A stretch of 64,000 nucleotides of DNA. It comes from Vitrella brassicaformis CCMP3155 (Eukaryota; Protista; Chromerida). The DNA is taken from the NCBI GenBank assembly GCA_001179505.1, contig CDMY01000258.1, forward strand, positions 62,001 through 126,000. Direction: 5' to 3'. Every line of letters starts with the position of its first letter. The stretch's first letter is position 1. This document shows, piece after piece, positions 39,887-55,087 of this stretch. Both the position numbers and the translations under genes were made by a program. The notes beneath the pieces are model-generated. The model saw only the letters and a program-made list of their open reading frames with translations. It made no database searches and was not told where the DNA came from.

Positions 39887-40892
39887 ACTCGTCCGAGCGT
39901 GAGGATGAGAGAACAAGAGGGGGACTGAGCAGCCACGCATGACACACACACACACACACACACAACCAACCAAGGGGGTGGATGTAGTGAGTGTCGTGAC
40001 TCGTGAGGTTTTCCTTCTCTATGCTCTGTCGGCCTGCATAGCGCCATGTGCCCATGTTGTGCATGTATGGCGTGAGTCGTAGAAAGGTGTTCTCTCCCTC
40101 CCTGACTGACCGACTCGATATCTGCATTGATCTCTCATGAGTCGACTCTCGAACCACGGTGTCTCAACATCAACCAATCGGTGGGTGCATCTTCGCAGAG
40201 ACTGATCATGATGGATGCACACAGAAAGATCGATCACCGTTGTGAGTGCGTGCGTGAGAAGGCTCACAGACCATTCAGACCACTCAGCCGCCTCCATGTC
40301 AAGGCGGCCAGCTGCCCGCGTGGAGTGCATTTTCTAATTTGGCTGCATCGCTGCGGCAAGGGGCCGTCCTCGCTTCATGCCGCAGGGACGGCCATGAAGT
40401 TAAGCCTCCACGCATGCCGTTAAGCTCTGCCGATGAGTTCAAGGCGCTCCCGATGGACTGAACATTGCAAATGACCAGCAACCTATCTGCAATCACCAGA
40501 GCACAGCGTATTGCGCCACACCAGGCCCTCCAAAGCCTTGGAAGGAGGCGGCCGTGGACGATCGTCGACGAGCTTGCAGATGTGCGAGCTTCAGTGATGA
40601 GTGAGATGATAAAGATGAAGATGACGACGATGCGAGCGACGATGCATCGTGAGCAGCAGCCCTTTCCACGGCCGCATTCGCCGGAGCCGCCAAGGAAACC
40701 ACGGCGCCGGAGATGGCGCAACTTCAACGTGGACAGCGGCGATGAAGGCGATTGCGGCGTCGTGGAAAGGAGCTGCCCATTTCGCTGCAGCAGAGCAGGC
40801 AGTCGGCCGGTGCACGTGGGATTCCCGTGTGCACCTGTCGGCTGCTGCTTCAGCGGCGCGTGTCGGCGCCATGTTCCCAAGGACCGCTCCGG

Positions 40893-43800
40893 ACACCCCG
40901 AGCCCCCTTCTCACCCCCCTCACCCCTCTCACCCCCCACAGCCACCACCACGGCCACACCCTGCCATGGCGTTCCCCCCACCCCCACCCCTTCCGTATTT
41001 CTTGCCGCCCTGCTTCATGCCACAGGGCATGTATCTGCCGCCGCATCACCTGATGATGCTGCCGCCGCCGGTGCCAATAGCAGCAGCAGCCAGCTCAAGG
41101 GCCGCGGGTGCGCATCCGATGCCCACGTCAGCCGAGGAGGTGATGCGGGCGCACGAGAGCCACATGAGCATTGGGAGGGAGGTCGGGCCGCCCAAGGCGT
41201 CGAGTGGTGTGGGGCCACGGCCGCCGACGATCGTCTTACCGAGGAGCCGCGGGAAGAGGACACCCCCCGCATCCGCCACGGGTGGCACGCAGATCGCCGA
41301 CGACAAGAACAATCAGCATGGCAAGCAATGGGAAGCGATCAAAAAGCAGTCCACTCCACTCATCTCTCGTGTGTCATGGTTTGCCATCAGGTTCGTTCGC
41401 TGCAGCAGCAGCAGCAGCAGCTGCGTCTAGCGGTGGTCCAGCCCCATCCCTCCCCCTCCCCCACCCCTCTCACCTTTATCCCATTCCCACCAGTGGCGCC
41501 ACTTCAGCGCATGTGTGTGCCATGCTGAGCCAGCCCTCGCACCTCACCGTCCTGTCATCCGCCGACAGACACACACCTGCCCCGCGAGGCAGCACCAACG
41601 GGGCAGCTCAGCTGATGGAGAGCCGCGTTGGGAACGCAGAGAGTCGTGGCGGACATGCGGGGGGGTCCTCAGCCTCCGCTAACGTTGCCATGCAGCAGCA
41701 CGACTCCCCTGCGCGGCGCCGGGGAGTAGCCGGAGGGCATGATCCCGTTGTTGTTGTCGAAGGCGGTGTCCACATGGGCCGTTTCGGGACTCCAGTGCCC
41801 TCATCGCAGCTGCATAACCATCATGACGTAAGGAGGGAGGGAGGGGGGAGGCATTAGTGGATGGGCTCATGCACACGCCCATCGGTGTTGCTTTCTTCCC
41901 TCCCTCAGGTAGACGCGCCGATGTCTCTCTTAGCGCCCTCAAGGATTCCCGTGTTGCCGCCCTCAAAAGATCCGGTTGAGGTGGGCGTCGTCCCCGGCAA
42001 CGACGCCAACTGCACAACGTCACCCGCACACCCCGAGCCCCCTTCTCACCCCCCACAGCCGCCACAGCCACACCCAGCCATGGCGTTCTCCCCACCACAA
42101 CATCATCCCTTCTTCTTCCCGCCCTTATTCATGCCGCCACAGGGCATGTATCTGCCGCCGCATCACCTGATGATGCAACCGCCGCCGGTGCCAATGGCAG
42201 CAGCAGCCAGCTCGATGGGCGCGGGTGGGCATCCGATGCCCACGTCAGCCGAGGAGGTGATGCGGGCGCACGAGAGCCACATGAGCATTGGGAGGGAGGT
42301 CGGGCCGCCCAAGGCGTCAGGTGGTGTGGGGCCACGGCCGCCCACCATCGTCTCACCGAGGAGCCGCGGGAAGAGGACACCGCCCGCATCCGCCACGGGT
42401 GGCACGCAGATCGCCGACGACAAGAACAATCAGCGTGGTAAGCAATGGGAAGCGATCGAAAAGCAGTCCACTCCACTCATCTCTCGTGTGTCATAGTGTG
42501 CCCTCAGGTTCGTTCTCTGCAGCTGCGTCTAGCGGTGGTCCAGCCCCATCCCTCCCCCTCCCCCACCCCTCTCACCTTTATCCCATTCCCACCAGTGGCG
42601 CCACTTCAGCGCATGTGTGTGCCATGCTGAGCCAGCCCTCGCACCTCCCCGTCCTGTCATCCGCCGACAGACACACACCTGACCCGCGAGGCAGCACCAA
42701 CGGGGCAGCTCAGCTGATGGAGAGCCGCGTTGGGAACGCAGAGAGTCGTGGCGGACATGCGGGGGGGTCCTCAGCCTCCGCTAACGTTGCCATGCAGCAN
42801 NNNNNNNNNNNNNNNNNNNNNNNNNNNNNNNNNNNNNNNNNNNNNNNNNNNNNNNNNNNNNNNNNNNNNNNNNNNNNNNNNNNNNNNNNNNNNNNNNNNN
42901 NNNNNNNNNNNNNNNNNNNNNNNNNNNNNNNNNNNNNNNNNNNNNNNNNNNNNNNNNNNNNNNNNNNNNNNNNNNNNNNNNNNNNNNNNNNNNNNNNNNN
43001 NNNNNNNNNNNNNNNNNNNNNNNNNNNNNNNNNNNNNNNNNNNNNNNNNNNNNNNNNNNNNNNNNNNNNNNNNNNNNNNNNNNNNNNNNNNNNNNNNNNC
43101 CGCTAACGTTGCCATGCAGCAGCACGACTCCCCTGCGCGGCGCCGGGGAGTAGCCGGAGGGCATGACCCCGTTGTTGTTGTCGAAGGCGGTGTCCACATG
43201 GGCCGTTTGGGGACTCCAGTGCCCTCATCGCAGCTGCATAACCATCATGACGTACGGAGGGAGGGAGGGGGGAGGCATTAGTGGATGGGCTCATGCACAC
43301 GCGCATCGGTGTTGCTTCTTCCCTCCCTCAGGTAGACGCGCGGATGTCTCTCTCAGCGGCCTCAAGGATTCCCGTGTTGCCGCCCTCAAAAGATCCGGTT
43401 GAGGTGGGCGTCGTCCCCGGCAACGACGCCAACTGCACAACGTCACCCGCACACCCCTCTCACCCCTCTCACTCCCCACGGCCACACCCAGCCATGGCGT
43501 TCCCCCCACCCCCACCCCATCCATACTTCGTCCCGCCCTTCGTCATGCCACAGGGCATGTATCTGCCGCCGCATCACCTGATGATGCAACCGCCGCCGGT
43601 GCCAATAGCAGCAGCAGCCAGCTCGATGGGCGCGGGTGGGCATCCGATGCCCACGTCAGCCGAGGAGGTGATGCGGGCGCACGAGGGCCACATGAGCATT
43701 GGGAGGGAGGTCGGGCCGCCCAAGGCGTCAAGTGGTTTGGGCCCACGGTTGCCGACGATCGTCTCACCGAGGAGCCGCGGGAAGAGGACACCGCCCCCAT

Positions 43801-44015
43801 CGGCCACGGGTGGCACGCAGATCGCCGACGACAAGAACAATCAGCATGGTAAGCAATGGGAAGCGATCGAAAAGCAGTCAACTCCACTCATCTCTCGTGT
43901 GTCATGGTTTGCCCTCAGGTTCGTTCGCTGCAGCAGCAGCTGCTGCGTCTAGCGGTGGTCCAGCCCCACCACTCCCCCTCCCCCACCCCTCTCACCTTCA
44001 TCCCATTCCCACCAG
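40893..44015 (+). repeat. Tandem array of a ~1.1-kb unit (about 2.7 visible copies), each with two exons and two introns
   Basis: The ATG of PAMAF recurs at 40966, 42080 and 43494. Translations are near-identical (QGMYLPPHHLMM, PTSAEEVMRAHESHMSIGREVGPPKAS, TQIADDKNNQ). Confidence 0.95.
42800..43099. other. Assembly gap (300 N) inside the tandem array
   Basis: Seen directly. The 22-mer CCGCTAACGTTGCCATGCAGCA ends the left flank and begins the right flank. Confidence 0.99.
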
Positions 44016-46313
44016 TGGCTCCCCAATGGTCAGCCCGGCCCTCCCCCACCTGCTGCACCCACAGCAGCCCGCCACGTCAACCTGCCAAGACACCACCACA
44101 GCCATGGCCATGGCCCTGCTGCATCACCGATGGGCACAGCAGAACAACGCCTTCCTGCGTGATAAGTTCGCTCACCCCGAAGAGATCCTCCGCTTCTCCG
44201 CCGACCAGAACGCCTTCGTTCTGACCCTCGACGGCCTCCCGGCGGCCGACGGCCAGCTGTCCTTCACCACGGCTCCGGAGGGTGACGGCGCCGTGACGGA
44301 GGGCAGCCTGACTGCCGCCCTCAACAAGGCCCTCATGTTAGCAGAGGAGCACCTGCGTCAGGGGGAGGATGACAAGGGGGTCAGCAGGCGGCCTGCCGAG
44401 GAGGGCGAAACAAGACGAAACGGCAGCGAAGCCGATGAGACCCAGCAGCACAGCAGGAGGAGGAGCAGCCCGTTGCGCCGCCCGCCCCGATTGCTGATGC
44501 ACCGGCACCACCGACCCTGGAGATGCCCCCAGACCCGGCCGGTGCTACCACGACTCAACGAAGGTGCGTGTGAACACCAACCCAGTCACGTGTTGTCTCA
44601 TATGTGTGTGTGCGTCATGCAATGTAGGTCTCAAGACGCCGCTGAGGAGGTCCCTGTCAGCCTCGTCACTGAGTCCGCCCCCGCCGCTGCATCAGCCACC
44701 GACGCTGAGGCCGCCCCCGCGCCGCTCATTGCCGAACAGCACGTGCCACAGAGCCAGCCCTCTCCGTCTGCCGTGCGGACCTACAACAAGAAGCGCATCG
44801 ACATCAGCGAGCACCACCTGACCGGGGAGTACTTCTTTAACTCCCGAACAATGTCGCTCAGGGCAACCCTCGCTGGCGAAGAGTGCATCGTCAAGGTGCG
44901 GACCCCCAACAGCCTGCTGCAGGTCATGGGCGCCGACATGAGCGACAAGCTCGGCAGAAGGTACGCCAACGTCGTCTCCTTCAGGGGGGTGGAGGACGAG
45001 GCACAGCTGCTGCATAGGCTGGAGGGACAGCTGGAGGCGCCAAAGCTGCTGTCGAGGGGCTTCGTCAGTGCGGCCGCTCCGTTCAAGGTCCGCCTGAAGC
45101 TGCCCGACTTGACGAGCTACACGTCGATGGCCGAGGGAGAGGAAACGTTTGAGTTTCGGCTGACCGGCCCCTTCTATGCCGTTGAGCTCCTCAGTAAGCA
45201 CAACACAAAAAGGGGGGTGTGGCTGGGTCGAAATGAGGTGCTAATGCTTTGTCTGACGGTGCAGAGTTTGGTGGTTGTGACGCCCCGAACATGACGCAGC
45301 TCACCCTCCTTCGAGCGGCCATCAATCTCGCCAACAAGCAGCAGCTGGACCCCGCAGCCGCTCTCGGAGCCTTCCAGCGCTCCTACGGCAAGCCCATACC
45401 AACCGCACTCTTCGACGCCGTCGCCGCCACAGCCCCTGAAGCGCTGCACCGATGCCTCCTGCGCGCCCTTGAGGTCATGCATGGCTTTTCGAAGCCAAAG
45501 AAGGCCCACGAGATGCCCGAGGCCGCCTCCGAGGATGACGGCTTCCCGCCCACCAAACCTTACTCGCCCCTACTCGGCCAGCTGCCGATGCAGACCAACG
45601 ACGAGGAGACCATCCCTGCCACCCATCTGCCGGCAGTGTGGACGAGGGATGGCGGAGAGGTGCTGCTCATCCACGGAGGATCACGGCGGCAACCTGATGG
45701 CGACGACTGGCGGCAAACACGGCATCGATGTCGTCCACATCGATCACGAGTTCGTGAGGGAGATGCGGCGCAATCAGGCGGTCGACGCGGCCAATCCCGG
45801 CCTGTTCATGGCCATCCCTCCCACCTTCGTGCCGTTGTCCTGCACGCTGAAGGAAGCCGCCCGCGAGGACATCGCTCCCGACAGCCCCTACACCGACGTC
45901 TACGGCACGGCAATGACGGTGGCCATGTGCGCCCTCGCCGGCCATCCCTCATGGTGCGAGAGCTTCAAGGGATGGTCCCATCCATGGCATGCGGCCGAGC
46001 CCACCACCCTCCACAGCCGCATCACAGCCGTGCGGGAGCAGCAGAAGGCTGAGGCGCGAGGCACCGATGCGGCGGCCATGTCGCGGGTCCGCACCCAGGG
46101 GCTCCAGGAGCTGGAGAGGGTGCATCAGCACCTCATACGCGACATCGAGGCCACTGCGGCGCAGGAGAGCACCAGAGGAGGGAGGCTGGACCTCGACATC
46201 GCCCTTGCCTGCCTGCGTTTCATTCCGCCCCTTGGCGAGCGACCAGGTGACATCAGCCTCCAGCCCCTTATCGAGGAAGTGAACCATCTGATCGCATCGG
46301 CTTACGGCCACTG

Positions 46314-47920
46314 ATGGGCGGGGGATGGCTTATCGCAAGGAGGGCAGCACTCGAAGTGGAGAGGGGCCACTATTCGATGATTGAGTTTGGACGATCGACA
46401 GGTGTCTCAAATGGCGGCAGGTTCGGCAGGCAGGCCGGTCCAGGCGAGCAATGGATGGTGAAGCAGTCGGATGGCGGTGGAGGCCAGAGGAAGCAGCAAG
46501 GCGCTGCGGCATCATCATCTGGTGGGGGCAAGTCGTCAGGTGTGGGCAAGACCGACAAGGGGCCCGGGAACCACGAGAGCATCATGAAGCCCAGGACCAC
46601 CGACGGCGTCAGTCAGGAAGACCTCGACAAGTGGGCCAAGGCGGGCCTGTGTCTGCGGTGCGGCAAGGACCACGAGTACTACCGCTGCTGCAAGTGGCGG
46701 GCGGAGCTCATCGCACAGGGCTGGAAGATCCCAGCCGGGCAACCTGCCGACAAGGGCGGTGGGGGCAGAGGGGTGGGGGCAACAATCATGCGGCCAGGCT
46801 GGCCCTCTCTGAGGAGCCGGACCCGGCTGCAGCACTCGAGCACTCACTCACACCACTCCATCCGTCTGGTCCGCCCCCCCGCATCACCCCAGACGACTCT
46901 GCATTCTTCACCCGGACTGAGCTGACGGTCGGCCCCGACTCAACTTTGACGAGGACCGTCTGCAGCTGCCCGATGTGTGTGAGGGAAAGAGCGTCGCACT
47001 GCTGCTGGACGGGGGCAGTCAGGCCGCCGTCATGGACGGCGGCGCATCGCTGCACATCCAGGGCTCGGAACGGCCCACGCCGGGGCTGAGCATCAAGACG
47101 GCCAAGGAAGGCCAGGACCTCCACATGGAGTGCAGGGGCGACGCTCTCATTGTCATCAAGGACAAGAATGGCGTCGAGTTGCCGATGAAGCTGAGTCATG
47201 TGTACGTCGCCCCCGACTGCGCAGCCATCCTCATCAGCGAGCGCCAACTGCACACAAGGGGTGGGGGTGTTCACAAGGTCGCTGGAGAGGCCAACTCTAC
47301 TGGTATGTGGTGAACATCGACGGCATACGACAGACGCGTGTCGTCCCCCTGACGTGTGTGGCGGGCGGCTACCGCCTGATGATGCGGCCGTGGACAGAGG
47401 CCGATGACAAGAGGGCTGAGGAGATGGCGGCGAGCGTCACTGTGGGCGACGCCATGGTGACGTCATGAGATGTGCTGCTGACTGGTGGGGGCCACACACA
47501 CGAGGAAGTGTGTTCGAGCGACTCGAGCGGTGATGAGAGTGACGGTGACGGTGGGCAGCACACGGACGAGTGCGAGACCGACGGGTGCGCGGCTGACGGA
47601 GACAGGCAACTGCCAGACATGCTCATGACTGGCAAGGAGCGCCAGAACCTACTCAACGCCATGGACCTACACACCAGTGCGGGCCACAAGGGCTTCTCAG
47701 AGCTGCCGGAGCTGTCGAGGGTCCTCCGCGGCTGCCCACCCATCCATCACCAACATCCCGGTGAAGCCTGCCTGCCCACCTTGCAACCAGGGCAAGGCCA
47801 AGAGGGCGCCCATCCGTCATCCCACCGGCCACCGCAAGGACGCCAGACGACCAGCACAGAAGTGGCACGTCGATTGGGCACATATGCGCGGGCAGATCGG
47901 TCCTCTGGGGAGGACCTGCA
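46314..47920 (+). mobile_element. Decayed, truncated Ty1/copia-type retrotransposon fragment (gag zinc knuckle, aspartic protease, gag-pre-integrase and start of integrase); no RT, RNase H or LTR seen
   Basis: CLRCGKDHEYYRC knuckle (46648-46688). LLLDGGSQ protease (D at 47008), followed by KLSHVYVAPDCAAILISERQL, the copia 'nVlyvP.l..nLiSv.qL' motif. LHTSAGH...CPPCNQGKAKRAP...KWHVDW. Several frameshifts and an in-frame TGA at 47466-47468. Confidence 0.8.
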
Positions 47921-49990
47921 GCTGGCGGTGCGGGCACCTACAAGGCTGACGGGTCTTCACGCCGCTCAAGATGGAGGGGTCCCTCTTGGTGGCCAGCTCA
48001 AGAGCTCCCTGAGCATCACAGCCAACAATCCCCTGGGAGCCGACGTCGACATCGGCGTGTCCGAGCTGCTACGGTCCCTCTTCCAAGCCCAAGGTGAAGA
48101 GAGAGAGGCCGGATGCGTCAATGTCTCACCTGACCATTCATATGACCTAACCACTCATTTGGCGTCTCTCTCTGTGTGCGTGTGTGTCCTGTCAGGTAAC
48201 GCGGGCGTCGTAATGGTCGCTTTGGCCGGCCTCTTGATGCTGCCCAACTCAGTCCAACTAAGGTGAGCCCAACAGACAAGGGGGACGGACCAATGAACGA
48301 GGCCGGCCATGTGGTATCTTCCTCCCTCCCTCCCTCCCTCTCTCTCTGAATGTGTGCATGCAGCCTCACTCCGTCTCTCCCTCGACATGTCAAGCCGAGG
48401 TCGCCACCGATAACCTGCTGGCGACTCCTTCGATGCTACAGCGGATGGATGGATGGACCATTTCCTTTTTTTTCCACCTGTTCGGTTTGTGTGCGGCGGG
48501 GCGTTTGTTTGGTCTGATCGGTCATTTGCTTTGTCGGTCGAGTGTGTGTGGCGCATGGTGCCGTCAGTGTGGCCTCGTGTGTTGCTGTGTCCATTTCGTC
48601 TGGCCGGCTGTCTTTCTGTCTGGCTGGCTGTCTGGTGTGCGTCGAATGTCTGCCGCCATTGCCACGCGTGTGCCATCCGGACACACCGACCACTGCGGCA
48701 AGAGTTGACTTCTTCTTAGAGAACGTCTGTCTGTCGTGTCGCCTCTCTGTCTGTCTGGCAGTCTCTCTGTCTGGCTGTCTGGCTGTCTGTCTGCCTTTCT
48801 GCCGCGGCTGCATTGAATTATGTGGTGTGCTGTGATGTGATGTGATGTGGCGCGGCTGCACTACACACTGACCGACTGACTCATACGTGGACGATGTGCT
48901 GCCTGCAATGTGCTGCATTGATGCCATGCCGTCCGCTTACTGACTGACTGGCTCATACTGAGAAAGGCGGAATCGACGCCCACCTGGCCTCACGCACACA
49001 TCAGCTCACCACGGGCAGTACGGTACTTGATAGAGCCAGTTGGGGTCACGCGTGTGCGATAAGCGAACGATGCCCAGGCGCAGGCAGGCATACCGTCGTT
49101 TCTGTCCTCCCACGCATGACATGACGCTGCTGCTGCTGCTGCTGCTGCTGACGCATTTGAGGGTTCCCCTTGCACTTTGCGCTAGATTTGTCTGTGCTCT
49201 TCTGAGAGACGGCACATCCATCCATCCAGTGTGACGCAGCTGGCGTGAAGGGTGGGTGGATGCGTGGTACGTTGACTGACGACCATGGACCGCTGCTGCA
49301 GTCATGATGTGGTGGCTGCATGATGAACCTACTGTGTGTTGATGTGTCGCTTGCTCGGCTGGTTTGTCCTTTTAGCGAGAGACTCGAGCTCTTCTTACTC
49401 GTTTTATTCGTTTTGGATGAGTGAATGGGAAATACGGACCGCTGGTTGATTTGATACCCAACCCACGCACACGACTTATCGTTTTGGAGTCCTGGCAAGC
49501 CGACCCATTCTTCCCTCCCTCTTGTTTCCCCCGCTGTGACCACACACTCGTACACCCGGACCTTTAAACACCACACCACACAAACGCATCCACACCGCAT
49601 CCACTCATCCAGCCATGCAGCCAGGCCAACGAGTGAACCCGTTTCTGTCTCCCTGTGTCCCTTACTGGTAGCGATAGATCCCTCCCTCCCTCTCCACTCA
49701 CTTAGTCAAACCTGCCTGTCTGTCTATTTGCCTGCCAGCACACAGCCGACAAACATCTCTCCCCCCGTCCCTCTCGCAGTCCCTCTCGCAGGCAGTGAAA
49801 AAAGAACCGCGCAAGCGAAATACAGCAGCCCCCTTCCGATCCACCAATCCCTCACAGACAGCATCCATCGAGGCGACAAAGACGTGTGTACACAGACGGC
49901 GAAAGCAAAGTGACTGAGTGTGTGTGGGTCTCAACAAACTGCGGTTCTGTATGCGTGTGTGTACGTGTGCATGTTATCCATAATGTACGT

Positions 49991-52589
49991 CTACGGTGGT
50001 CCCTCCATGACAACATCGTCTGCGGCAGAACCAGCACCACCACCACTGCCACTGCCACCATCAGCAGCAACAGTAGCGGCAGCGGCAGCAGCAGCAGCAG
50101 CAGCCTGTGACGGCAACTCCTCACCTGAAAGACACACAACACAACACAACACATGTACCTCTGCCCGCACCTTTCCACCAGTGCCTCCCTCTCTCTTTCC
50201 GCCCGCCCGGGATACTTACCACCCCCAGAAGCAGCAGCAGTATCCTTGTGCTGCGTGTGTGTGTCCTCCTTGACCCCGTTTGCCTCCGATGGCCCGCTGC
50301 ACTGGTCGGTCGACACCTCACCAAACGGCACAGACGCACCGGGGGCGGAGATGGGGGCAGGTACGGCACCCCCAACACTCGCAGCACCAGGCTGATCACC
50401 ATCACGCATATCATCACCGGCGGCTGCAGGGCCAGCAGCAGGGCTGTGGTCTGGCTGCTCGGCCTGCATCCCTACCGCCACTCCCGCCGCCATTGCCTCG
50501 GCGAATGGGGGCGGCTCGGCGAGCGGCTCGCTGCCGCCCTCCGTGCCCCTTAATCCCATCCCCGCCAACGCTCTTATCTCGTCTCTGTAGCTGGTGGCCG
50601 CCGTGATGGCCTCCTGCACGTGGATGTAGGTGTCTCCCATGACCTCGAAGCGCCGCTCGTCACTGTCGCCCACTGCCTTGACGGCAATGACCACCTTGCG
50701 CGAGAGGGAGAGCTTGCAGATCTTCATGCCGAGGTCCCGCCCCTGCTCGCGCTTGAGCATGTCCTTCATGGCGCTCCGGGTGCAGCTCAGCAGGTGCTCG
50801 TAAGCCAGGGGCTCATGGGGAGTCAGGTGCCATGCGATGGGCGGCTGGGGGGCCCGGCCGGCTTGCGATGGACTGGCCGTCTCCAAAACAGCAGCGGCAG
50901 GGGAGCCCTCCACTCCTTCCATGCCCTCGTTCTCGCCCTCCATGCCCTCGCCAGCAGCAGGGGACCGCTGCATGTCCATCGCTATGGCGCCTTCAGGCTG
51001 CTGCTCGTCGCCCTCCAGCACAGTGGGAAGAGAAGTGCCGCGACCCCTCTTGCGCCCCCGCCCAGCCGACACGCCACCCCTACCTCTACCCCGCCCCCTG
51101 CCACGCGACGAACGGCCCCGCCCTCTGGAAGGTGACTTCTCGAACACCACACCGGCACCCTCGCCCCCGTCCGAAGGTGACGGGTGCTTACGTGGCCTGC
51201 CGGGCTTGCGCTTGACGGCGGGGATGAGTGGGAGGGGCAGCAGGGGCTGCTCGGTGTGTGCTGCGGCAGCAGCCGTGGGTGAGAGGTCCTCGTCTTGATC
51301 TTGGTCAGGGTGTGGCGGGAGCATGGGCTGGTCTTCGCTCTGCTGGGTGATGGAGGACGACTCGCGGGACACCCGACGCATCTTGGGTTTCCGTGGCGGT
51401 GCCAGGGGCACAGGGCCGCCCTCGTCTCCCTCGAGCTCACCACCCTCGCCCTCATCCTGATCCTCGGCCTCGTCCGGCATTGCCAGCGCCCGCTTGGATG
51501 GCTCCATCTGCGCCTCGTCATCGGCGGCAGCCCCCTCCTTCTTGAGGCGTCTCTTCGGCTGCCGGCTGCTGCCGAGCCGCAGGCGTCTGCCGTCGTCCAC
51601 AGGGGCCCGTGGTGCGACGCCGTTTTTGGCCAGGAGGGCGTGGCGGACGTTCATGGCCTCCTGGATGATCTGCTGGGCGGTCTTGCCCGGCACCACGTGG
51701 ACCGTCTGTGTGTCCCGCTCGCCCTTTTTGCCGCCACTGGCCTCGTCGACGCGCTTCGGCACCGCCACACGGATGCTGGCGCGCTCGCCGTCCCGCACCT
51801 CCCGCCGCATGAGGGTCATGTAGAGGCTGCCCGAGAAGGTCACCCTCAGGCGCTTGATCTCGTTGTCCACCTGTTGGATGAGGCTGAGGGACGATGGCGG
51901 CGAGCTGCCCCCTGCGCCCGCCGGCTCGCTCCACCGCCGCTTGTCGCGCCGCAGCAGCATGCTGTCGGACTGCTCCTCCGTGACGGCGCGGCGCACTCTC
52001 TTGGCCGCCGACGATTGTGTTGGTGGCTTCTTGGTGTCATTGTTCTCCTTCTTTATGTGTGGCATGGCGATGGGCTTGTCATCGTCGCTGCTGGACTCGT
52101 CAGGCGACTCGTCTACAGGTATGCCGGGGACGATGCCCACCTCACACGCGAGGGCGTCGCGGGACTGACAGGCCTTCTTGAGTGCGTCGAGGAGCGCGTG
52201 TGCGTTGCGGTTGAAGGGCTTGAGGACGTCCTGACGCGACATGCCGTTGTGGCTCACCTTGACAACGTAACCGGACTCCTTGCGCGACCAGCTGATGTAC
52301 CGGTGACCCAATGCTGCACAAAGTCAGACCAATGTGTGTGTGTGTGTGTGTGCCCCTTGTGTGTCCATTGTGTGTCGTCTGCGGTGTGCTGTGCTGTGTA
52401 CCTTTTGTGTATGCGTTGGCCCAGGTAGGTGCTTTGTCCGCTAGCTTGAGCAGCAGCTTAGTGGCGAAGTCCTGCTGCTCCTTCTTGGTCAACACGCCCT
52501 CGTGCGCATGACGAAGGAAACGATTCTGAACCACTGAATGACATTACACACGACCACACACACGTGATGACGCATGCGCATCGAGTGAA

Positions 52590-52623
<34 letters not shown>

Positions 52624-54846
52624 TCTCTCTGTGCGCCTTACGTGTAGGCGTCTTCTGCTTGCCGTGCGATTCCAGCTTCTGGAAGATCAGTCCCTTCTCC
52701 ACCGGGTCCGCCCGCTTGAGCCGCGCGACCACCTCCATCGCCCGCCACAGCCCCTCCTTTCTCTCGTGCTGCGCCGCGAACCGACGCCGCATCGCCGGGT
52801 CTCTCTCGAAGAACCCCTGGTTGTCCTTGATCAACATGTTCCGCAGGTGGGCCTCGAACCGCGGCTGCAGCTTATTGCCCTCCAGCACGTAGGTGGCGTC
52901 AGATGAGATCTTGTGGGGGTGGAGGTTGAACAGAAGGGGGTAGGGATTGCGCGAGGGCGACGGGGGGCTGGACGGGGCGATGCGCTTCGGTGGCCGCGAC
53001 GGCACAGCCGACTTGGCCGGTTTGCGAGGGGCTTTGGGCGGTGGCGGGGCGGCGGATGGCGTCGAGGGCGCCTCGTCGTCATGCGGATCGTCTATGGATG
53101 ATTCGTCCTCGTGTCGTGCGGGTGGGGGTGTGGGCGGTGGCCTCTTGGCCTTGATGGGACGCTTAGCCGAGAACCCACCACTGGGCGTCCACTCCTCCTC
53201 TGCGTCGCCCCTCGCCCGCGATCTGCCCCGACCGCCGCCCCGCCCCCTTCCTCTCCCACGCCCCCTCTCTCTCGTGGGCTCGTGTGCGACGGGCAGCCGC
53301 AGGGGCAAATCCTCATCGCTGTTGACGTTGTTGTCCTGCCCATTGTGCGGCATCTTGCTCGGCCAGCTGACCCCTCTGTCATCCTCCGCCTGGCGAACGT
53401 GTTCCTCGGCCAACATGAGGGCCTTGTTCAGGGCGGCAGTCAGGCCGCCCTCCGTCACGGCGCCGTCACCCTCCGGAGCCGCGGTGAAGGACAGCTGGCC
53501 GTCGGCCGCCGGGAGGCCGTCGAGGGTCAGAACGAAGGCGTTCTGGTCGGCGGAGAAGCGGAGGATCTCTTCAGGGTGAGCGAACTTGTCACGGAGGAAG
53601 GCGTTGTTCTGCTGGGCCCATCGGTGATGGAGCAGGGCCATGGCCATGGCCGCTGTGGTGTTGGTGGTGGTGTCTTGGCAGGTTGACGTGGCGGGCTGCT
53701 GTGGGGGCAGTAGGTGGGGGAGGGCCGGGTTGGCCATTGGGTCGGCCGCGTCACCACTGGTGGGAATGGGATAAAGGTGAGAGGGGTGGGGGAGGGGGAG
53801 GGATGGGGCTGGACCACCGCTAGACGCAGCCGCAGCTGCAGAGAACGAACCTGAGGGCACACCATGACACACGAGAGATGAGTGGAGTTGACTGCTTTTC
53901 GATCGCTTCCCATTGCTTACCATGCTGGTCGTTCTTGTCGTCGGCGATCTGTGTGCCATCCGTGGCGGATGCGGGCGGTGTCCTCTTCCCGCGGCTCCTC
54001 GGTGAGACGATCGTGGGCGGCCGTGGCCCCACACCACCCGACGCCCTGGGCGGCCCGACCTCCCTCCCGATGCTCATGTGGCCCTCGTGCGCCCGCATCA
54101 CCTCCTCGGCTGACGTGGGCATCGGATGCGCACCCGCGGCCCTTGAGCTGGCTGGTGCTGCCATTGGCACCGGCGGCGGTTGCATCATCAGGTGATGCGG
54201 CGGCAGATACATGCCCTGTGGCGGCATGAAGCAGGGCGGGAAGAAATACGGATGGGGTGGGGGTGGGGGGAACGCCATGGCTGGGTGTGGCTGTTGGGAG
54301 TGAGGGGGGTGAGAAAGGGGCTCGGGGTGAGCGGGTGACGTTGTGCAGTTGGCGTCGTTGCCGGGGACGACGTCCACCTCAACCGGATCCTCTGGGGGCG
54401 GCAACACGGGAATCCTTGAGGGCAAGGGCGGCGCCGAGAGAGACATCGGCGCGTCTACCTGAGGGAGGGAAGAAAGCAACACCGATGCGCGTGTGCATGA
54501 GCCCATCCACTAATGCCTCCCTCCCTCCCTCCCTCCTTACGTCATGATGGTTATGCAGCTGCGATGAGGGCACTGGAGTCCCCAAACGGCCCATGTGGAC
54601 ACCGCCTTCGACAACAACAACGGGGTCATGCCCTCCGGCTACTCCCCGGCGCCGCGCAGGGGAGTCGTGCTGCTGCATGGCGACGTCAGCGGAGGCTGAG
54701 GACCCCCCCGCATGTCCGCCACGACTCTCTGCGTTCCCAACGCGGCTCTCCATCAGCTGAGCTGCCCCGTTGGTGCTGCCTCGCGGGTCAGGTGTGTGTC
54801 TGTCGGCGGATGACAGGACGGGGAGGTGCGAGGGCTGGCTCAGCAT
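49991..54846 (-). CDS. ApiAP2-like transcription factor with up to three AP2-like domains, an AT-hook and RG repeats; multi-exon
   Basis: GHRYISWSRKESGYVVKVSHNG...LLDALKKACQSRDAL (52155-52311) is AP2-like. Two further strand-strand-strand-helix segments end in EAMNVRHALL and EAITAATSYRDEI. AT-hook KRKPGRPRKH at ~51184-51213. Phase-1 introns 52641-52534, 52401-52314 and 50219-50125 link ORFs 52544-54037, 52142-52534 and 49852-52311 to a last exon ending in TAG at 49991. Confidence 0.7.
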
Positions 54847-54862
54847 GGCACACACATGCGCC
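53366..54862 (-). repeat. Inverted copy of one array unit plus the conserved module (homologous to ~42620-44384)
   Basis: ORFs 54379-54855, 53820-54506 and 52544-54037 repeat the peptides of 41171-41857, 41861-42496 and 43699-45294. Homology ends at GGGGTCAGC (44376-44384 versus 53366-53374). Confidence 0.95.
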
Positions 54863-55087
54863 GAGGCGATGTGGCGGCCACACGAAACACAAGGGGGTGA
54901 TTCTTGGACGGATAGTTCTCGGACTGAGAGTTTGGCAGGGAGGTCGTCACGCCAAAGAGAGCTGTCCTTCTACGAATGCAGGCGTTTGTTCGCCTCCTCG
55001 TCACAAAGCTCGCACGCCTAGGGTGCGGTGTGAAACCGCCGCTGCTGCTGCTCTGGAGAGAGGAACTGTGAGGTCATCGGGTGCGCG

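Follow-up and report, generated by a model that had tools for sequence, protein, structure and literature searches.

How do two neighbouring genes that face each other come to begin with the same protein segment and to end in different ones? The question is raised by a 64,000-nucleotide (nt) stretch of the genome of Vitrella brassicaformis CCMP3155 (contig CDMY01000258.1, here scaffold C258, positions 62,001 to 126,000), which we call the window and in whose own numbering coordinates on this scaffold are given. In it a proline-rich N-terminal "header" stands at the start of a minus-strand gene and, inverted about 9 kb away, of a plus-strand gene. A preliminary description of the locus, drawn from the sequence alone, proposed that exon shuffling had placed this header on interchangeable C-termini, AP2/AT-hook-like in one gene and kinase-like in the other, by analogy with Crinkler-type header/effector proteins. 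Our analysis shows that the process is recent domain shuffling by segmental duplication. The best explanation overall, and one that we consider likely to be right, is that three unrelated gene bodies, rather than two, have acquired a young, Vitrella-specific header by copying at the DNA level. The bodies would be those of a minus-strand AT-hook/RG-rich protein, a plus-strand protein of the APH/protein-kinase type and, on another scaffold (C482), a member of a second, distantly related kinase-like family.

The header-bearing segment, ~1.5 kb long, contains a short first exon followed by a Pro-rich exon and a third exon that encodes a module of ~80-95 amino acids (aa). Two deposited proteins, CEL97903.1 (942 aa, plus strand) and CEL97906.1 (1439 aa, minus strand), carry the header in frame. 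Both genes open with the same three exons, namely "segB" (...HNHHD), the Pro-rich exon, and an exon joining an Ala/Pro linker to the module, and these are separated by introns of 80-82 nt and 70 nt with GT-AG ends. The product would be a header of ~375-415 aa, composed of the short first exon, a probably disordered Pro-rich part and a module folded as helix, three strands and helix. The module peptide LLHHRWAQQNNAFLRDKF...ALNKALMLAEEH is encoded by both window copies. A repeat search of the window aligned three arms of the plus-strand copy (41935-42530, 43538-43943 and 44090-44389) with 53362-54423 (-) at 93-94% identity, and 41504-41848 (+) with 54520-54864 (-) at 98%. The abrupt end of homology noticed earlier was found again in the alignment, directly 3' of GGGGTCAGC, at 44377-44385 (+) and 53374-53366 (-). 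The two inverted, in-frame copies of the preliminary description were thus recovered, but its count was too low: the window has four copies of the Pro-rich unit, three in tandem on the plus strand and one on the minus strand, and the module has a copy elsewhere.

This copy came from the search of the Vitrella genome for the module that had been suggested with the first description. In the whole 72.7 Mb genome (72,700,666 bases in 1064 scaffolds) there are three module loci, the third lying on scaffold C482 (31985-32269; 86% amino-acid identity), where it precedes a different kinase-like domain. Exons were searched singly and joined only for the frame check, and the database proteins are spliced models. 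At all three loci, the module and the start of the gene-specific sequence lie in a single unbroken open frame (of 497, 531 and 621 aa), and the fusions are therefore independent of splicing predictions. The copies are genuine, recent and in frame. Between loci, the header has 85-93% identity in DNA and 75-86% in amino acids, and the gene bodies are beyond DNA alignment. BLASTP found nothing shared between CEL97903.1 and the C482 frame outside the header, their C-termini included, and tblastx of C482 against the plus locus gave no match beyond the header. The header thus appears to be the moving part, younger than the bodies to which it is attached. The breakpoint between the plus and minus genes is inside exon 3, not in an intron, and both frames continue past it; the header was shuffled at the DNA level, but the earlier term exon shuffling is only half right. 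With indels, the homology between the plus gene and C482 extends to the exon 3 donor; a breakpoint within intron 3 or close to it would suit that graft.

The claim that both window copies have been held under selection at the protein level was borne out. Over the 80 codons of the module core, the plus and minus copies differ by nine synonymous and two non-synonymous changes (dS 0.17, dN 0.011), and the ratio of non-synonymous to synonymous rates (dN/dS), whose calculation had also been proposed, is 0.07. The synonymous bias is significant (Fisher p=7e-5), with a binomial probability of P=1e-4 for this ratio under neutrality. These values point to purifying selection on the module in both copies. 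For the Pro-rich exon the ratio is ~0.5 among the window copies, and it reaches ~1 or more against C482, values that would fit a disordered region. Among five copies of the header, all 13 exonic indels are multiples of three, and both indels in intron 1 are of a single nucleotide.

The module itself is a Vitrella-specific domain without detectable relatives, and it is not an AP2 domain. It matched no family in Pfam or NCBIfam, a sequence-profile comparison with PDB found no relative (best E=0.66), and a scan of metagenome contigs gave no match. A HMMER profile built from the three copies and run against 1.84e9 protein representatives retrieved only CEL97903.1 and CEL97906.1 at strong E-values; two bacterial T/G/A-rich Ig-like repeat proteins that also matched the profile were rejected as compositional. 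AlphaFold, given the three-sequence alignment, predicts with moderate confidence (pLDDT 71) a helix (residues 3-26), three strands (33-36, 41-45 and 55-58) and a second helix (70-94). The structural comparison proposed at the outset yielded no clear fold match for this model, with nothing at E<=0.001 in a Foldseek search of PDB and a best Z of 5.6, within the stated noise, from the exhaustive aligner VIA (wide). Nor was the faint AP2-like pattern read into the module recovered: with a profile of 19 canonical Vitrella AP2 domains, hhalign aligned only four columns (E=0.12), the Foldseek match to the Plasmodium AP2 structure 3igm_A had E=1.9 and probability 0.10, and AP2 is not among the 50 best VIA matches. 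Also by hhalign, the module is unrelated to the conserved C-terminal domain of CEL97906.1 and its paralogues.

The genes share with Crinkler (CRN) proteins the idea of a single N-terminal header on varied C-terminal domains, and one could imagine a header specialised for delivery or targeting that is combined with many exchangeable effector domains. One header does stand on three different C-termini, two of them kinase-like, and C-termini of the kinase type are known from Crinklers. Several findings speak against such a system, which we consider extremely improbable and close to refuted. The header exists in only three copies in 72.7 Mb, and 20 or more kinase-like paralogues are without it; neither CEL97903.1 nor CEL97906.1 contains an LxLFLAK or HVLV (HVLVxxP) motif; and the helix/three-strand/helix fold predicted for the module is not ubiquitin-like. 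A literature search found no paper joining Vitrella and Crinkler. The N-termini of the header proteins, MESRVGNAESRGG and MQQHDSPARRRG, are not hydrophobic. As a domain shared by otherwise different regulatory proteins, the module may perhaps act as a handle for protein-protein interaction or localisation, bringing these proteins to one partner or place, with the Pro-rich part serving as a flexible linker. The idea that the header derives from a transposon was abandoned, as there are three copies with differing ends and no terminal repeats at the aligned ends (no systematic search for such repeats was made).

The 5'-most 1.1 kb of the plus-strand segment forms a tandem array of at least three units, which start at ~40948, 42065 and 43476 and have a period of ~1.1 kb. 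The first unit begins with a 5' region, "upA", which is common to the C482 copy only and not to the minus copy; blastn of C482 against the window covers 40447-41497 at 80.6% identity, and an open frame from 40465 runs into the rest of the array without a stop. Units 2 and 3 begin with segB, which is 96.5-99% identical to that of the minus copy. Both inter-unit junctions are identical: exon 3 (CCACCAGTGG) is followed by ~10 nt and then by the sequence lying just upstream of segB in the minus gene. GTGGC microhomology is present at the join. When spliced at the same intron positions, the array (40465-44555) is open for 1132 codons, and the coding lengths of the units, 966 and 939 nt, are both multiples of three. 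The second intron of unit 1 has a GC donor (GCAAGC, 41321-41326), and the other four copies read GTAAGC.

The array is interrupted by an assembly gap flanked by identical 22-nt sequences (42778-42799 before it and 43100-43121 after it). Both flanks correspond to one position of the repeat, which in unit 1 is 41676-41697 and in the minus copy 54671-54692, so that the gap falls within the tandem array, as a contig break in repeated sequence. With the 300 N in place the flanks are in different frames, and when merged at their overlap they are in frame, as in unit 1. Either the flanks overlap and the gap is in truth empty, or it hides some integral number of ~1.1 kb units. The start codon of the deposited plus gene, at 43114, lies 15 nt past the gap and was probably imposed by it.

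For the body of the plus gene, the kinase-like label given in the preliminary description stands as a statement about its family. CEL97903.1 itself has no Pfam match in this part, but its family is represented by at least 8-15 genomic loci, whose intact members read LIHGDAHGGNL...HIDHE, and one of these (L053) scores 24.2 bits with Pfam APH against a cut-off of 23.2. In the ESM Atlas, the clusters nearest to the C-terminus of CEL97903.1 are all protein kinases (features 0.91-0.93, predicted structure TM ~0.5). Judged from these similarities, the plus body would be a member of a Vitrella-expanded family of the APH/protein-kinase type. Similarity between CEL97903.1 and its closest paralogue begins only past intron 3, and the header shows no significant Pro-rich similarity to a kinase paralogue's N-terminus.

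Several observations weigh against the explanation by a young header copied onto three gene bodies. The catalytic loop of the window copy is frameshifted at ~45670-45676, where the DNA is 2 nt shorter than that of its paralogues: LLIHG stands in one frame and EDHGGNLM...VVHIDHE in another. The deposited model of CEL97903.1 excises the whole loop as a 91-nt "intron" and probably needs correction. Other signs of decay at this gene are the GC donor in unit 1 and, directly 3' of the stop codon, an apparently truncated remnant like a long terminal repeat retrotransposon (46314-48300, +). This remnant has a gag-like frame with a zinc-knuckle sequence (CLRCGKDHEYYRC) and, short of the cut-off, weakly matches Pfam Pol_BBD (E=0.0023). 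Values of dN/dS are higher for the C482 copy (module, 0.3-0.5; Pro-rich exon, ~1 or more), and many of the indels fall in trinucleotide-like (GCA/GCT-type) repeats, in which multiples of three arise without selection. The gap leaves the number of array units at "at least 3", and the deposited gene models are mostly Augustus predictions (PMC4501334). Finally, the function suggested for the module is purely inferred, no family, fold or motif having matched.

The frameshift, the loop that the deposited model has to skip, the GC donor and the retroelement remnant, together with stop codons in several family members, would all suit an alternative in which duplication left the plus gene behind as a dead, decaying chimeric pseudogene and function is confined to the minus gene and perhaps the C482 gene. 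We regard this as unlikely. Had the plus lineage been neutral since the split of the copies, with one of them drifting freely, the differences observed in the module would be improbable (P=0.005); the exonic indels all keep the frame, and the array is free of stops over about 1100 codons. The frameshift may also have arisen recently, reflect an error of sequencing or be tolerated in a protein that acts as a pseudokinase. The plus copy is one of three things: pseudokinase, pseudogene or sequencing error.

The gap raises a different suspicion, namely that the array, the inverted copy or both are mis-joined repeats and the fusions errors of gene prediction. It lies within a repeat, its flanks overlap, the deposited start of the plus gene comes directly after it, and the gene models are mostly automatic. 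Nevertheless, we hold an artefact of assembly or annotation to be very improbable. The copies differ among themselves by 1-19%, so they are not collapsed identical reads. The tandem junction sits in gap-free sequence and contains ~10 nt found in neither parent, and the frames that join the module to gene-specific sequence need no splicing.

The gene on C482 has a kinase-like body. It scores 27.8 bits with Pkinase (E=2e-6), below the cut-off of 31.7, and 24.3 bits with APH, against a cut-off of 23.2, and its HNDFHPDN and IIDYE constitute an intact HxD..N/D-x-E core; with these scores and motifs it belongs to the kinase-like superfamily. Its family has at least 15 loci, and a paralogue 51% identical to it (P0005) carries PF00069 and is named a protein kinase domain protein. 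A word search among proteins of 342-1087 aa did not find a deposited protein for the C482 gene, which may lack an annotation or have a different model. The HxD..N and D-x-E motifs, which also occur in paralogues of the plus body, are those of protein-kinase-like proteins (PF00069; APH, PF01636), but both Vitrella families are very divergent and expanded, and the window copy is frameshifted in the catalytic loop.

The two families share only a 36-aa catalytic core (33% identity, E=3e-4). With two of the three header genes kinase-like, their catalytic cores distantly related and the motif ID-x-ETSR common to both, it could be argued that header and kinase were united long ago in one family, and that the header looks young through gene conversion while the kinases diverged. 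Gene conversion between the window copies is indeed clear from their mosaic identity. An ancient union nevertheless seems hardly likely. More than 20 kinase-like paralogues are without the module, the nearest ones, at 37-58% identity, among them, and both bodies have many header-less relatives; since the genome has only three copies, none of these relatives carries the module. The third carrier is not a kinase, and C482 is a separate scaffold. The intron and the synonymous sites of the header are alike as well, and recent copying is the simpler explanation.

If the header was recently copied onto the three bodies, an order of events can be proposed. The plus arrangement would be older than the minus one, because C482, the most distant copy, shares both of its ends (upA and the tail of exon 3) with the plus copy. 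First, the plus gene would have received the 5' part of a C482-like header gene (upA through the end of exon 3), with the breakpoint in intron 3 or close to it. Next, a partial copy spanning the middle of exon 2 to the middle of exon 3 would have been inserted, inverted and in frame, into the AT-hook gene at a distance of 9 kb. The younger age of segB (96.5-99% identity; the module has 93%) indicates that a piece was later returned to the plus gene and then amplified in tandem. The returned piece would have comprised segB, the Pro-rich exon and the start of exon 3, and its amplification may have proceeded via GTGGC microhomology and unequal crossing-over. The identities form a mosaic, with 96.5-99% for segB, 92-96% for the core and 87-93% for the C482 copy, and gene conversion between the inverted copies would be continuing. 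In a bolder version, the header is a mobile newborn domain grafted onto regulatory proteins, the inverted copies both convert each other and recombine to flip the interval between them, and the array is a selected N-terminal repeat of variable length. We think this improbable; if true, flipping at the inverted 1.5 kb copies would swap the promoter and the 5' array between the AT-hook and kinase-like genes.

It is well known that chimeric genes can arise by segmental duplication or exon shuffling, a textbook example being jingwei of Drosophila. The Vitrella genes resemble these in that a duplicated 5' gene segment has been joined in frame to the body of another gene, in that one breakpoint (plus versus C482) is at or near an intron, and in that the carriers have paralogues without the grafted part. 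They differ in that the other breakpoint lies within a coding exon and is still in frame, in that the graft is found on three bodies, one copy having undergone in-frame tandem amplification of its 5' exons, and in that two neighbouring copies are inverted and still exchange sequence. No new kind of system is revealed: this is clean and fairly ordinary domain shuffling. It is, however, a well-resolved recent example of a lineage-specific domain without relatives spreading among genes, which offers datable copies, one intron and one exon breakpoint, in-frame tandem amplification and continuing exchange between inverted copies. Chromerids are the nearest free-living relatives of the apicomplexan parasites, and the locus provides a small case in which to test ideas on gene birth and domain shuffling in them. 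It also brings to light two faults of the deposited models that call for repair, a start codon set by a gap and an "intron" that hides a frameshift. The features are collected in the table below.

Table. Coordinates of the header segment, the tandem array and the three header-bearing genes (window numbering on scaffold C258 unless another scaffold is named)
Feature	Position	Strand	Basis or remark
Header segment, minus copy	53362-54864	-	scaffold C258
Header segment, inverted plus copy	42606-44389	+	scaffold C258
Module core (ALLHHRW...AEEH), plus copy	44113..44352	+	
Module core, minus copy	53399..53638	-	
Tandem unit 1: upA (40447-40889), running as open frame into the first Pro-rich exon copy	40447..41320	+	blastn against C482; frame check
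Copy of intron 2 in unit 1, 70 nt	41321..41390	+	GCAAGC...CATCAG
Start of exon 3 fused in frame to segB first-exon sequence	41391..41827	+	junction CCACCAGTGG/CGCCACTTCA/GCGCATG, ~41497
Pro-rich exon, tandem unit 2	41909..42437	+	repeat search; alignment; frame check
Start of exon 3, second identical tandem junction, and segB up to the gap	42508..42799	+	
Assembly gap within the tandem repeat	42800..43099	none	flanks share 22 nt
Plus gene, exon 1 (segB type), deposited	43114..43251	+	tblastn of CEL97903.1
Plus gene, Pro-rich exon 2 (tandem unit 3)	43332..43848	+	
Plus gene, exon 3: Ala/Pro linker, module, tail common to C482 only	43919..44556	+	
Plus gene, kinase-like body, deposited exons 4-6; homology to header-less paralogues starts here	44629..46314	+	
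Plus gene, deposited 91-nt "intron" over catalytic loop and HIDHE motif	45660..45750	+	
Minus gene, exon 1 (segB)	54541..54753	-	homology to plus array ends at 54864, or ~54886 with small indels
Minus gene, Pro-rich exon 2	53921..54458	-	
Minus gene, exon 3: linker, module, then gene-specific RG-rich and Pro-rich sequence, frame unbroken	52642..53850	-	
Minus gene, small exon, in frame at GT-AG sites on both sides	52402..52533	-	
Minus gene, C-terminal exons: possible degenerate AP2-like segment (residues 700-752), AT-hook, RG repeats, ~90-aa domain	49991..52313	-	
C482 header-kinase gene (L003)	C482:31700-33540		

The minus gene encodes an AT-hook/RG-rich protein that probably binds nucleic acid in the nucleus. 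Its exon junctions, re-derived from the DNA (donor 52641, exon 52533-52402, acceptor before 52313), are in frame and match CEL97906.1. Of the two labels given to it earlier, the AT-hook has held: KRKPGRPRKH (KRKPGRPRKHPS), with a GRP core and basic flanks, lies at residue 1069 and is assigned by motif alone. The AP2-like label is only weakly suggested. An hhalign comparison of CEL97906.1 with a profile of 19 Vitrella AP2 sequences aligned 50 of its 53 columns in register, over the segment listed in the table, at E=0.027 and a probability of 1.8%, and in the language-model atlas all neighbours of the C-terminal part are AP2 clusters (0.80-0.83), which the tool itself grades as leads only. A single-sequence AlphaFold model of the segment has the order strand-strand-helix-helix-strand, at low confidence (pLDDT 66), and Foldseek found no AP2 match for it. 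Neither CEL97906.1 nor its 819-aa frame reaches the gathering score of Pfam AP2 (PF00847) or matches any Pfam family at E<=0.1 or even E<=1. ApiAP2 transcription factors are expanded in chromerids (Woo et al. 2015, PMC4501334), and at least 150 Pfam AP2 matches in the Vitrella genome agree with this expansion. Many of them form dense clusters on scaffolds C290, C269, C488, C781 and C708, and the 150 best matches listed genome-wide include none on C258, the window included. The minus gene thus resembles ApiAP2 proteins in its AT-hook, its RG repeats and the one segment in register with the AP2 profile, but it differs in having no Pfam AP2 match, while at least 150 canonical AP2 domains of the same genome score well.

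Near its C-terminus, CEL97906.1 has a conserved domain of ~90 aa (W.L.P...QLLS...K...I.VK...EV.G.TY.HV.QA...YRD), encoded at 50374-50874 (-), which has no Pfam match and, by hhalign, no relation to the AP2 profile or the header module. It is also present on scaffolds C688, in two tandem copies (L047, 1501-1971, and one upstream), and C284 (L048, 1501-1911). The two small introns of the minus gene contain microsatellites, (GA)n at 52585-52635 and (CA)n at 52330-52350 (-).

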